A DNA stretch of 64,000 nt, taken from Adineta vaga. Its lineage: Eukaryota > Animalia > Rotifera. Positions 2,168-26,144 of the stretch are shown here, piece after piece. The DNA lies in assembly GCA_021613535.1 (NCBI GenBank), contig CP075495.1, positions 12,152,001 through 12,216,000 of the forward strand, given 5' to 3'. The notes beneath the pieces were generated by a model. The model saw only the letters and a list, made by a program, of their open reading frames with translations. It ran no database searches and had not been told where the DNA came from. Position 1 is the first letter of the stretch. The number at the start of each line of letters is the position of its first letter. The position numbers and the translations under genes are program-made.

Positions 2168-5032
2168 TTAGAGTATATTACAAAGACGACTTCGTTTTCG
2201 TTGTTTACTTTCATCTTTGGAATTGTTTGGAATTACACTATTACTATGATTTTGTTTTCGATCAAATAAATTTTGAAGTTCACTTTGTAATGAAACATAT
2301 TCTGTAATTGGAACACTTGTACCTGTACGTTGAAGAAGTTCATCATTTAAACTAAAATACATGGATGTTGGTTCCATTGATAACATTTCAGCAAGATGAA
2401 CAAGTGCAGAACCATTAAGACGTCTTACTAAAGGTTTTAATGTGTCGAAATTACCATTTTTAGTATTACACCATTCGCTAACATCTTCTAGAGACCAATC
2501 AAGTACAGGACATGTCATATAATTATTAGATTGATTAAGAATTAATTGATCATCTGTTTGATTTACTAGACGTGAATTATGTTCATCAATGGAATGTAAA
2601 TGACGACGAATTTCTTTTAAAATTGAATTTGTATCAATGATTAAAATTGATTCAAGCCAACTACCTTCAATATCACATTGTTGATCAATTTCAATTGTTA
2701 ATATTGGAACTGAATAGGGTTGAAACGAAATATATTGATAAACAAAATGTGTTAAATTATCAATTCTCATTTTTGAACTTGCACAAAAAAGGCATAGTAA
2801 GGATTGATCAATAAGATGAATGATTGCATCAAGTGATTCACATTTTGTTGTTAGAATAAGTTCAAATGGATATTCGAATTCAGTTTGAAGACGTTCACGA
2901 AATGTTTCACATATATCATAATAAGATTCATCGGCATAAAAGATACAAATCATATTATTTGATGTTAAAGATAAACCATGATTTGATATTGTTCGATCTA
3001 AAGATTTCAAATTATGTATAGAATTCAAAATTAATAATAAAATTTAACTTACTTAAATTTTGATTGCCTGAATCTAGTAGGAAAAGAATTGCTTGTGAAG
3101 CTAAACATATGTTTGGTGTCGATGTATTGAGATTTGTTGTTAACCATTGACATAAATCTAAACGTTTTTGTAAAATTTCATGAATATTTGTTGATGTACT
3201 AAATGAAAAAGTCCACAATAATTCAATCATAATTTCAATTAAATTCAATGAATTTTCATCATCTTCTACTAAAGATAGTATTGTATCGATAATCATCGAA
3301 ATTAAATTGATTTTTTTCGTATATTTTATTAATTCATCAACAATCATTATAAATGATAAGAAATGTGTACGTAATAAACTAAACCAATCAAGTGCTACAA
3401 TATAGATTTGATCACGTGATGATGATGTTGTCGAATCAAATGATGTATCATCATGAGTTTTAGTTAATATTTGAAGAATTTTAATTGTTCGTTGTGCTAA
3501 TAGATGTATTAATCGTTTAAAAAATGATGATTGATAAAAATCACGTTGAGTTATTAATAATGATAATGGATACCAAAGACTATGTGGTGGACGTTTTATT
3601 GTTCGTAAAATATGTTGAATATAACCTAAACGACGTAAATGTCGTTTACCAACGATGGTTTTTGAAATGGTTACTAATAATGAAACAATATCATCCATAA
3701 CATATAGTGTTAAACATAAATTATCAAAATGTGGAATAAAATAAGCACAAATATTTGCTTCAATAATTGCATCGTGATATGTCAATGCTAAACGATTGAT
3801 AAGACGTATTAAACGAACAATTAGTGGTGATAAATCATCAATTGGATTTTGAGGAATTTCACACCATATATGAAGAATTTTACGTATGGATGGTATTAGA
3901 TCAAGTGTCGATGTTGTAATCGATGCAATACAATAATCTAAACATGTAAATAGAAGAAAAATTGAATGAATCGAAATTTTTTCGTTTAATGATGTAGTTC
4001 TCAGAAAATCTGTCGACAATTGAATGAATAATGGAAATTTTAAACAATCAAGAAGACATGGTGTTAAATGATCATTGACAATTGTATTTGATATTAAAAT
4101 TGGATGACTAAATAAAATAATTAAAGAATTAACACATCGGTAAAGAACATCGATAATATCCTTTTGATTTGCTTGATCATCTGATGTAGTTTCTAGTTGA
4201 ATATCGTCTGGAGAAACTTGATCTTCATCATTCTGAAGAAGAAGAAGAAGAAGAAAAAAGAATAAACCATCAACTTAGACATATGAAGATGAGAGTATCA
4301 CTTATATTCGTCACGACGTATGGATTTCAATTTCAACGTGACAATCTCATTCTAATTTTCTTTCCTTTTTTTGTATCAAAGCATTGAATAACAGCAAAAT
4401 CTACTTAAGATTTTCAATGATTAATTTCTCAACATGATTTTGCTTTTTAATCGAATGCACATTTCTTTTTGTTATGTTCTCAATGTTAATAATAAAACTT
4501 TAAAATGTGTTCGATTTTCTTTTCTTTTTTCTTCTTTTCTATTATTTACCGTTGAATGACTTGTAACTGAACAATGTTGTTCATTGTTTTCATTGGTAAT
4601 CAATTGATCAATAACACGACATAATGTATTTAGAAAACCTTTGTCTACAAATAAATGTGTTAAAACACGTTGAAAGATTTCTTGTTTATCGTCAGTAATA
4701 TGAAAATGATCCTGTTGGTTTAACCATTCGGATAAAAGTTTAAATAATTGATGCATGTAAAATAAAGCTCGATGTTCTTCTCCATTTATTGTATTATTAA
4801 CTAACCATAATTGTAATAAACGTTCGAACCATTGTCGTATAACCAGAAATAATTGATGATTAATTAAATCGATATTCAATTGTTCAATTGGCATACATGA
4901 TATCGATTGACCGATGAGAGAAAGTGATGGAAGTAGATATTGAGGTGGACATGCATGAAAAAGTGCAAGAATTTCATCCAGATGTTCTGTTGGTAATAAG
5001 GATGATGTGCATAATTGACGAATTTCATTCAT
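2168..5032 (-). CDS. ARM-like helical + degenerate TIR-like + SAM-like protein (~830 aa); exons complement(4550-5032, 3053-4232, 2168-2997)
   Basis: Three ORF-track segments join in frame through GT-AG introns 4233-4549 and 2998-3052 (2493 nt, 831 codons). The N-terminus is Leu-rich and helical (e.g. IELLWTFSFS). ICIFYA...ICETFRERL...DAIIHLIDQSLLCLFCASS...VPILTI...GSWL follows the TIR_2 pattern. PVLDWSLEDVSEWC...LNGSALVHL is SAM-like. Confidence 0.75.
4235..4255. repeat. (GAA)n microsatellite that forms the polypyrimidine tract of a minus-strand acceptor
   Basis: gaagaagaagaagaagaagaa lies directly beside the CT (AG on the minus strand) at 4233-4234. Confidence 0.8.
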
Positions 5033-23640: not shown

Positions 23641-24362
23641 ATGATTTTCATTTTCTTTTGTTTTGTTTCTCAGATATACATATATATAGAAATTTCTATC
23701 TATTTATGTATATATTTATATATATATTTATTGATATAAAGCTATTTGTCATAATTGTTTTGATCCGAAATAAAAGAATATTTCATCCTTTTAGATGAAA
23801 TTGCTTGAAAAAAAATACTATCGAAAATATAACTTATCTAATGATTAAAAAGAAATATTCTCTATAAACATGAAAAAATATGGCTTTTCTCATTGTTAAT
23901 TCTGGATAATATCGAAGTCTTCTTTCAAGGAATTAATATCATAATCGATCTGATACATGTTAATACAGAATGAAAGATGAAAGAAGTTTCAGTTCTTTAA
24001 CTAATTAGTTTTTTACAACTATCACGATATAGAATGCCATCTATCGATGAACTTAAATTTTTATATTAAATTTTTCAATTAATTTTTTAATTATTTTTCA
24101 AAAGATTATTCAAGAAATTTCCATTAAATGAATATGAATTAAGTCGAGCGCTACATTCGTCGAATAATCAATGATAGCATTTAGCGACATATAATATTTA
24201 TCTGTTCTTCATCGATTTCCTTTCCTTTCCTTTTTTTTTCTTTTCCGTATATATCAAAAAATCTTCTTCAGTTTCTGAATAGATAAGAAAACGAAGGAAA
24301 ATAACTGAAAGACAGAAGAAAAAAAAGAAAACGATTTGACATTTCGTGAAAGATTTTAAAAA

Positions 24363-25824
24363 ATGCCCTCAACGGGCGGTGTTGTCGATTCAACAATTGT
24401 CTCGATAAGACCAATTGATGTCATTCCAACATCGAGACAACCTTCTGCAGGTACGGCAACAACAACGACAAATGCACCAGATGATCGTGAAATCTTTAAA
24501 GTAAATTTCAAAAATTCCATTATCATTCATTCTTGTTTGTTTGTTTCTATAGGCATTACATGATTGTATGAAAGATGTAGGCAAATTTCGACAATATGTT
24601 TATTATATTGGTACATCATGTGATACAACAAAATTACGAAATAAAATACAGAAACTTAAAGAACGACTTAATCGAAGTTTTTTCTATCAACGAGAATTAA
24701 TAGGAAAAGCAGCATCTACAACAGCTTCGTAAGTTGTATACGACAAAAGAAAACAACTAAACAGTCTATTCATATAATTTAGAGTTAAAAGTGAATTAGC
24801 AATGGTTAGTTTTGAAAAATGTCTATGTTTTACATTGGCATCATTAAGTTATTATGAAGATTTACTTCATAAATTTTCTATACTTCTTGTTTATTTTCCA
24901 TTAGCTAGTGGAGGTATGATCAGATGAAAATATATTCCAATGATTTGTTTATTTTTCTCGTTTAAAGATCGTACAAATGTTGTTAATTTGGGTTTTGAAG
25001 ATTCAACAATTAATGCTGATGAAGTTTCATACGAAAATCATGAAGCTGAAGAAAATGAAACAAATCGATACATTGAATTATTAAAGTAAATCAAATCTTA
25101 TTTATCGTTGAATTGAATAAATAAAAGGACGTATTTTTTTTGTCCAGTCAAATTCAATGCGTACAATCACTTCGAGAAGAAATCGAACAAATTGATGTTT
25201 ATCAATTACGAACTCATGCGACATCTTATTCAAAAGAATTCGGTAAATATTATTTAAAAAAGAAAAGAACAGAACTTTTTTCTTTTTATTTGATTGACAA
25301 TTCATTTTTTTTCTTTTGCAGTGGAAAATATGCACAAATATACAACTGAGATAACTATGGATAATCTTCAACGACAAGAAAGAAATCGTTATACACTCCG
25401 GCGTTATTTTAATGAAGAACCATCGGGAGCCGTATGTTATTGTTGTTGTTGTTATATAACATTGCATGTAGATTGAATGATATGCTTATGCTTTCTATGT
25501 TCGATTGTATTCTGTTTCGTCAGTGAATGAGAAAAGAAAAAAAAAAGGCAAACATGAAACAAGACTAGATAAAAGGTAATTTATTTTTCTTTTGCTTTTC
25601 TTTAGTCTTGTCAAGGTTATTTACTCATTCATTTTGACTATGTTTATTATGTTGAAAGTATTCTATTGATATTGATTTTCATGATTTAGGCCGGAAGGTG
25701 TTATCAACAATGTAATCGACGAAAATTTCTTTGTACACTAACAATTGTCTTGTTAGTCTTGGTGATTGTCGCTGTTATTGTAACAGTCATTGTAGCTACA
25801 AATAAAGCATCTACTGGTGGTTAA
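24363..25824 (+). CDS. RGS9BP: R7-RGS membrane anchor (R9AP/RGS9BP - R7BP/RGS7BP family, syntaxin-Habc-like); TM-anchored isoform ends 25824, Cys-tail isoform ends 25476
   Basis: Exons 24363-24500, 24553-24728, 24783-24913, 24968-25085, 25148-25242, 25322-25431 and 25690-25824 splice in frame. ALHDCMKDVGKFRQYVYYIGTSCDTTKLRNKIQK, SFEKCL and YFPL...VVNLG parallel R9AP as recalled (VGGSADSQNLRQELQK, EFERLW, AFPL...LVRTG). No SNARE motif was recognised. Confidence 0.72.
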
Positions 25825-26144
25825 CTAAGAACAGTTTTTTTTCTACGGTCAGATCAATTTTAAATTGCCGCCCGTTTTGAAGAAAAAAACGAATGAATTA
25901 GTATTCTAACTGATTGAACTTCTATTATTATTATTTTTTTGTTCTTTTTTGCTTTATCTATATTTCTTTTTTCTATATTTGTGTATATATATATATATGT
26001 ATATCCCGTCCAATGTATTACAAATTGTTTAGTTCGATTTCTAATTTATTTTAAAATACAAAACAAAATTGCTTGCTTACTTTGTATGCATATATATATA
26101 TATACATATATTGCTAATTGATGTTTTATATTTCAGATTTGATT

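Follow-up and report, generated by a model that had tools for sequence, protein, structure and literature searches.

How many ways has one gene of fastening its product to a membrane, or of not fastening it? Vertebrates place complexes of R7-family RGS proteins with Gbeta5 in two ways, by a permanent transmembrane (TM) anchor, R9AP, and by the reversibly palmitoylated R7BP. The rotifer Adineta vaga has a gene, starting at position 24363 of the 64,000-nucleotide (nt) stretch analyzed here (the window: CP075495.1, positions 12,152,001 to 12,216,000, on contig 2 of the 100.8 Mb, six-contig assembly GCA_021613535.1), which a sequence-only reading took to make both types of anchor, a run of C-terminal cysteines on retention of the last intron and a tail-anchor helix on its removal, perhaps as an ancestral state later divided between paralogs. 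That dual-anchor idea proves to be partly supported. The locus is better described as a gene for a syntaxin-fold, tail-anchored protein with a conserved 3' splice switch, and most likely as the bdelloid counterpart of the R9AP/R7BP anchors of R7-RGS/Gbeta5, an account that we hold with a confidence above indifference and well short of firm. The selected function would be the choice between anchored and unanchored protein.

Translation of the window gives 7 exons on the plus strand, with all introns GT-AG, upstream introns of 52-79 nt and a 258-nt gap before the last exon (Table 1). RNA contigs of four spliced runs (X1, X2, X5 and X6), from three studies, were placed on 24200-26100. All five upstream introns have been removed in them, and the gap 25432-25689, previously read as a single last intron, resolves into a mini-intron (25432-25471), a cassette exon (25472-25575) and a further intron (25576-25689). 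Exon 6 ends ...GGA GCC and is followed in phase 0 by a GTATGT donor that is unchanged in five species. From this point, where alternative C-termini had been correctly foreseen, three mRNA forms lead on. In form (a), present in three of the four runs, the mini-intron is kept and the 114-nt intron spliced, and the message encodes the Cys tail with its stop at 25476 (TGA 25474-25476); it is the sole path in the contigs of X1 and X5, which are continuous from 25321 to 25573, and one branch in X2, so that 25432-25476 is read through in the contigs of all three runs. Form (b), in two of the four, has the mini-intron spliced and the cassette kept (joint 25431|25472, in X6 and as one branch in X2) and encodes a protein ending ...SGA-Ile-Glu-stop, with no anchor. 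Form (c) joins exon 6 straight to 25690, skips the cassette and encodes the TM form. The word depth of the three branches in X2 is alike (7.7, 7.7 and 8.5).

Some features of this evidence weigh against the account offered here. It consists of contigs, not reads, which establish presence, give proportions only roughly and may miss rare forms. The joint 25431|25690 of form (c), which the sequence-only reading had singled out as the junction to look for, does occur, in one run of the four (X2) and in a single short contig whose shorter side has 29 nt, just under the advised 31. Forms (a) and (b) retain the junction 25575|25690, respectively 99 and 95 nt downstream of their stops, and because of that spacing the short forms of the A. 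vaga copy could be degraded rather than translated; all isoforms are known here at the RNA level alone. The same junction undoes, for the A. vaga copy, the earlier argument that retention would be safe from junction-dependent nonsense-mediated decay, since the read-through mRNAs keep it 99 nt past their stop.

Which part of this arrangement has been conserved? Five genomic loci share a common layout of mini-intron, cassette beginning ATTGARTGA, intron and anchor exon, in which splice sites and flanking blocks are invariant. The start of the cassette, ATTGARTGATATGC, does not change from Adineta to Rotaria and has stops in more than one frame; with the mini-intron spliced, the cassette adds Ile-Glu and then the TGA at 25478-25480. 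The cassette body is variable in length (75-104 nt) and in sequence. Bdelloid transcripts from metatranscriptomes and Logan (L003, L004, L011 and L013) have all upstream introns removed and carry the cassette, stopping one or two residues after exon 6 (V-stop or IE-stop) with the anchor exon continuing as untranslated sequence. Likewise, all six RNA-derived bdelloid protein clusters are TM-less short forms that end after exon 6 as VC-stop, V-stop or IE-stop.

Does the cassette serve, then, merely to destroy the message that carries it? It could be a poison exon, whose inclusion makes an mRNA degraded through splicing coupled to nonsense-mediated decay and so tunes the amount of TM protein, the short proteins being functionless. 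The architecture would suit this well, as the cassette is conserved and has its stop not just more than 50 nt but 95-99 nt upstream of the junction 25575|25690, and invariance of splice sites, early multi-frame stops and flanking blocks around a body that varies is typical of regulated poison exons. However, mRNAs with the cassette are the very forms that were assembled, both in the A. vaga runs and in several bdelloid metatranscriptomes, which would be unexpected were they efficiently degraded; steady-state contigs suggest abundance, not instability, though contig depth is a poor measure. Further, the other ohnolog lineage reaches a TM-less protein by a different path, retention of a terminal 42-nt intron with an immediate stop, seen in three samples and with no downstream junction, and this favors the protein outcome over decay as what matters. 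Since two different mechanisms give the same protein outcome, it is presumably an anchor-less protein, and not RNA decay alone, that is maintained. We consider the poison exon unlikely as the explanation of the switch.

A more dismissive alternative is that the variant forms are splicing noise, incompletely processed RNA at unusually short introns, with no selected role. At 40 and 32-42 nt the introns concerned approach the minimum size and could be slow to splice, and one contig of X2 keeps the 114-nt intron as well. Such sluggishness would hardly explain why the five other introns of these transcripts are fully removed, why the boundaries of the cassette and the blocks beside it do not vary between two bdelloid families, or why the TM-less outcome recurs in at least 6 lineages and in both ohnolog types, and we think noise very improbable indeed. 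Judged by these comparisons, the switch between anchored and unanchored protein is conserved: more than one bdelloid family has it, and so do both of the ancient gene copies.

Several further observations concern the same region. Just after the cassette donor, two intron blocks, 25576-25602 (GTAATT..TCTTTTGCTTTTCT) and 25611-25618 (TCAAGGTT), are invariant in A. vaga and four Rotaria loci and exceed most of the coding sequence in conservation. They are likely to be a splicing control element. A consensus hairpin between the cassette donor and the invariant block downstream of it was considered and is not claimed, being weak (-3.2 kcal/mol) and devoid of covariation. Comparison of 25380-25740 with Rfam gave chance-level matches only, so no known small RNA accounts for the long last intron. 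A run of ten A residues in the cassette, at 25537, differs in length by one base in X2 and X6, through strain polymorphism or homopolymer error. Very short introns are evidently functional in these animals: the 40-nt mini-intron is spliced in two A. vaga runs, and of two Logan transcripts from a single study (L017 ~935-966 and L013) one has a 32-nt intron removed and the other keeps it. Public ortholog models disagree at the 3' end. Of two annotations from Rotaria socialis and R. magnacalcarata (P0030 and P0033), one translates through part of an intron and the other stops at the cassette (IE-stop), and Rotaria annotations in general mix TM and truncated forms, the splice switch confusing automatic annotation.

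The anchor exon itself has fared as predicted. Its acceptor, tttag|GCC, opens the exon at 25690, from which 44 codons lead to TAA 25822-25824 by way of ~25 consecutive hydrophobic residues. Between A. vaga and R. magnacalcarata (codon changes were tallied by eye) 26 of the 44 codons differ, 18 of them synonymously and 8 by replacements that mostly exchange Val and Ile, which leaves 36 of the 44 residues identical. With most of the codon differences synonymous, the exon is, by this measure, translated in the TM frame and under strong purifying selection. It is found too in the ohnolog on contig 5 (L002), as Cys-x3-Cys-NRRK-x-L-Cys and then a hydrophobic helix; annotated proteins of 298-303 amino acids (aa) with the same tail are present in Rotaria sordida, R. 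socialis, Rotaria sp. Silwood1, Silwood2, Adineta ricciae and A. steineri; and two distant non-bdelloid relatives known from RNA contigs (P0015 and P0016) also end in a basic-Cys stretch and a helix. The TM form is real and it is conserved, in the ohnolog, in Rotaria and in other Adineta.

One detail of this tail stands apart. The stretch Cys-x3-Cys-NRRK-x-L-Cys lies right before the helix (25690-25735; P0018-P0032; L002 2690-2735) and is conserved in both ohnolog types. Polybasic, Cys-containing and juxtamembrane, it is a candidate for acylation, and a motif of R7BP type could have developed from such a stretch.

What of the cysteines that gave rise to the idea of two anchors? Their mRNA exists and is abundant in A. 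vaga, and the donor at 25431/25432 in phase 0, the read-through peptide VCYCCCCYITLHVD and the stop at 25476 had all been placed correctly. The Cys-tail form is moreover already the public annotation, with no functional name: the read-through product is letter for letter the 270-aa NCBI protein P0022, 'hypothetical protein I4U23_009549 [Adineta vaga]'. It is the origin of the cysteines that is against them. The run is a (TGT)4 / (TTG)n microsatellite, recognized as such because its 12-mer TGTTGTTGTTGT has 2 occurrences in the window versus 0.02 expected, and the Cys reading of such a triplet repeat depends on frame, a one-in-three chance. The leading Val-Cys is the GTATGT donor translated in phase 0. 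The T/G-rich repeat resembles intron sequence, not coding sequence, and is possibly a splicing signal. An acidic stretch precedes the run, with no polybasic stretch directly before it.

Nor do relatives share the tail. Read-through gives V(V)C and a stop in the ohnolog on contig 5, VC-stop or VR-stop in other copies of that (C5) type, and V-stop in those copies of the window's own (C2) type that are without the mini-intron. Four Rotaria loci do possess the mini-intron, at 59 or 63 nt, and its read-through yields tails of 11-45 residues with 3-7 Cys. Since mini-intron lengths differ by 4 nt among Rotaria and by 19-23 nt from A. vaga, neither frame nor peptide is conserved, whereas the nucleotide motif beside the acceptor is conserved regardless of frame. 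A word search with the 60-aa genomic open reading frame that contains the Cys tail gave no candidate. Of the expectation that both tails would be conserved, the TM half has held, and the Cys run, absent in the ohnolog and unconserved in the four Rotaria orthologs, has not; an unconserved intronic TGT microsatellite is what the sequence-only reading had itself named as telling against a second anchor. The Cys run is real and transcribed, yet it is a species-specific by-product of an unspliced mini-intron and not a conserved second anchor.

Could the tail nevertheless work? Were it a functional S-palmitoylated anchor of R7BP type, one gene would give lipid and TM anchors, possibly from ancestral times. 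Clusters such as CYCCCCY at a C-terminus belong to the motifs on which acyltransferases act. In two A. vaga runs the read-through mRNA dominates the assembly, a third run contains it too, and its product matches an annotated protein; the Rotaria read-through tails are likewise supplied with Cys. Against this stand the removal of the mini-intron with its microsatellite in X2 and X6, the short cysteine-poor read-through of the ohnolog types, the drift of frame and peptide in Rotaria, the derivation of the first Cys from the donor and the lack of a polybasic stretch directly before the run. We find a functional lipid anchor quite doubtful, and the ancestral dual anchor does not follow in any case, because what has been conserved is a cassette with a stop in it, whose product lacks an anchor. 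No less doubtful is a more recent variant of the thought, that in A. vaga the microsatellite in the retained mini-intron has created a translated, S-acylated Cys cluster and so given one R9AP-like gene three membrane states, TM, reversible lipid and none. If true, it would be a caught-in-the-act example of a palmitoylated R7BP-type anchor arising from a TM-anchored ancestor. The polybasic Cys stretch beside the TM helix hints at a second route to the same end, loss of the helix with retention of an acylated linker. On the account preferred here, the Cys tail arose recently, in one lineage, as a variant of the unanchored form.

Table 1. Features of the gene in the window and the evidence for each
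Feature	Position	Strand	Remarks
Exon 1	24363..24500	+	Holds the start codon (ATG at 24363); joint 24500|24553 in 4/4 RNA runs
Exon 2	24553..24728	+	First helices of the tri-helical domain, motif GTSCD..LR.K; translation and RNA contigs
Exon 3	24783..24913	+	Translation and RNA contigs
Exon 4	24968..25085	+	Translation and RNA contigs
Exon 5	25148..25242	+	Coiled-coil region; translation and RNA contigs
Exon 6	25322..25431	+	Final exon common to every isoform; ends ...EEPSGA; translation and RNA contigs
Mini-intron, 40 nt, GT..AG	25432..25471	+	(TGT)n run 25441-25452 inside; spliced or kept according to mRNA
Read-through coding tail VCYCCCCYITLHVD and stop	25432..25476	+	Cys-tail isoform, 270 aa
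Cassette exon, 104 nt	25472..25575	+	RNA contigs; also in transcripts L003 and L004
Intron after cassette, 114 nt	25576..25689	+	Joint 25575|25690 in X1, X2 and X5; loose end in X6
Anchor exon	25690..25824	+	TM isoform, 300 aa; Cys-x3-Cys-NRRK-x-L-Cys, helix, short luminal end, stop
3' untranslated region (UTR), as far as RNA contigs extend	25825..25913	+	Contig ends at 25913 adjoin a skipped repeat

Beyond the gene, a non-coding element, CCCGTCCAATGTATTACAAATTGTTTAGTTC, at ~25997-26030 (L005 ~4706-4736; L004 ~1227-1257), lies between it and the next one. Conserved from Adineta to Rotaria, this element also occurs within a long transcript contig and may belong to the 3' UTR, or to the promoter or 5' UTR of the gene that follows. 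Pfam matched none of the neighboring open reading frames when these were checked for synteny with the Rotaria loci (NUDE_C upstream, DPF/PHD downstream).

Is the protein that is being switched a member of the R7BP/R9AP family, as had been supposed? Members have a tri-helical N-terminus and a heptad or SNARE-like motif, followed by a TM segment or by a polybasic stretch and two Cys (PMC2171691, PMC5795056). The search queries were single exons or proteins already in the databases, among them P0022, which equals the joined read-through form; exon 2 retrieves all relatives, at identities of 82-35%. The AlphaFold model of P0021 (mean predicted local distance difference test score, pLDDT, 62.7) has N-terminal helices at 41-63, 72-105 and 109-143 with pLDDT 79-91, two coiled-coil helices of mixed confidence at 179-203 and 214-237 and a long C-terminal helix, with a ~25-residue low-confidence linker separating the coiled coil from the TM helix. 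The top PDB fold matches found by Foldseek are syntaxin Habc domains, with weak E-values (1ez3_A: target TM-score 0.74, root-mean-square deviation 2.1). The model thus predicts the tri-helical, Habc-like N-terminal domain of R7BP and R9AP, and C-terminal membrane attachment is provided by a TM helix that is conserved in bdelloids, P0015 and P0016; a lipid motif of R7BP type is not among the conserved features.

Feature neighbors in the ESM Atlas, which are lead-level evidence, point the same way: the three nearest clusters of P0016 are all RGS9BP (0.92, 0.89 and 0.88), and P0022 has Zgc:109913 (0.92) and an RGS9BP-B-like protein (0.79) among its neighbors. The Atlas shape search gave generic helical bundles only, with TM-score < 0.5. 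Anchors of the family act by binding the DEP domain of R7-RGS/Gbeta5, whose location they set, and the genome has an ohnolog pair of R7-type RGS genes, one with DEP, GGL and RGS matches in order (C6:6478366-6480478 (-)) and one with GGL and RGS (C3:9573089-9573579 (+)), which would encode the expected partners of an R9AP/R7BP-like anchor. Literature searches produced nothing on the R7BP/R9AP family in rotifers.

Alternatively, the protein is no relative of R7BP and R9AP but a divergent syntaxin-like or unrelated tail-anchored protein, in which case the link with RGS would be spurious and the splice switch would stand. Its sole Pfam signal, exon by exon and in full-length relatives, is a recurrent sub-threshold Syntaxin_2 (E 0.002, exon 2), its best fold matches are true syntaxins, and the top Atlas neighbors of the window's protein are unnamed arthropod proteins of Syntaxin_2 type (0.93-0.94). 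No search gave a statistically significant match to the sequence of a bona fide R7BP or R9AP, the copy of Pfam used being one without PF28461 (RGS9BP_C); phmmer, word and profile searches gave only rotifer-type proteins, and a mixed alignment too gave no named non-rotifer relative. Yet a syntaxin it hardly seems to be. Matches to the SNARE domain (PF05739), in the exons and in full-length relatives, are at noise level only (E 2.3-8.3) and fall over the hydrophobic tail, the family profile, run against PDB sequences with E up to 10 allowed, finds no chain and hence no syntaxin, and some 25 low-confidence residues part the coiled coil from the TM helix whereas the SNARE helix of a Qa-SNARE runs into the membrane. 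The RGS9BP neighbors of P0016 also count against this alternative, and a weak likeness to SNAREs has been described for R7BP and R9AP themselves, along with their tri-helical N-terminus (PMC2171691, PMC5795056). An origin outside the family is in our estimation a minor possibility, though one to be kept in mind. Membership is probable, through the fold, the Atlas neighbors and the R7-type RGS genes; the searches gave no significant alignment to a named member.

How would the switch work, supposing that membership holds? Splicing of exon 6 to 25690 would give the 300-aa anchored form, ending in the polybasic Cys-containing juxtamembrane stretch and the TM helix, and this cassette-skipped form would hold R7-RGS/Gbeta5 at the membrane. 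With cassette 25472-25575 included, translation would stop two codons after exon 6, the anchor exon becoming 3' UTR, and the product would be the whole cytosolic part, the same binding body without an anchor. In A. vaga the mini-intron before the cassette often stays unspliced, and the microsatellite would then be read as CYCCCCY ahead of the cassette stop. The unanchored form could keep the complex soluble, stabilize it off the membrane or compete with the anchored form.

If the gene is indeed a family member, it would present a third solution to the placing of R7-RGS/Gbeta5, in a protostome, with one gene toggling its anchor by means of a conserved stop-bearing cassette. It would be a testable model for the pre-vertebrate state of R7-RGS anchors and would extend a family that earlier surveys hardly traced beyond deuterostomes and nematodes (PMC2171691, PMC5795056, PMC3357403). 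Whatever the family, the locus is a warning for isoform annotation where introns are very short: the A. vaga annotation is the read-through, and those of Rotaria are mixed.

Of known systems R9AP (RGS9BP), the vertebrate TM anchor of RGS9/Gbeta5, is close in plan. Its parts, a tri-helical N-terminal domain, then a coiled coil of heptad or SNARE-like kind, then a TM tail anchor at the C-terminus, follow one another as they would in the modeled rotifer protein (PMC5795056), and RGS9BP clusters are the nearest language-model neighbors of the relative P0016. The rotifer protein, which has no significant sequence alignment to it, is longer and differs in a ~40-residue N-terminal low-complexity stretch and in the polybasic Cys linker before the helix. 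To our knowledge there is no conserved stop cassette upstream of the R9AP anchor.

Syntaxins (Qa-SNAREs) resemble the modeled protein in having a tail anchor behind a Habc-like bundle of three helices and one further helix, but the rotifer protein has no detectable SNARE motif beside the membrane. Some syntaxin genes make soluble isoforms through alternative 3' exons. Poison cassette exons offer another likeness, in that a conserved cassette introduces an early stop, with another junction after it, and the intron flanks are highly conserved; unlike theirs, the stop-bearing mRNAs of the rotifer are abundant at steady state and encode the full cytosolic protein minus its anchor.

Within the family, Caenorhabditis elegans RSBP-1, which works with an R7 RGS protein and is the sole invertebrate R7BP/R9AP homolog described (PMC3357403), shows that the family exists in protostomes. 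Finally, R7BP (RGS7BP), the palmitoylated vertebrate anchor that shuttles between membrane and nucleus, has a body of what is probably the same family type, and its basic and Cys residues find an echo both in the clustered Cys of the A. vaga read-through tail and in the basic-plus-Cys stretch of the rotifer TM exon. R7BP, however, has its polybasic stretch directly before Cys-Cys and no TM helix, whereas the rotifer Cys run follows an acidic stretch, is intronic and is not conserved, the conserved alternative being a form with no anchor at all. A further likeness would be that attachment is switchable. In R7BP it is switched off by depalmitoylation (PMC2171691); in the rotifer gene the off-switch would be splicing, the counterpart at the level of RNA of what R7BP achieves by shedding its lipid.

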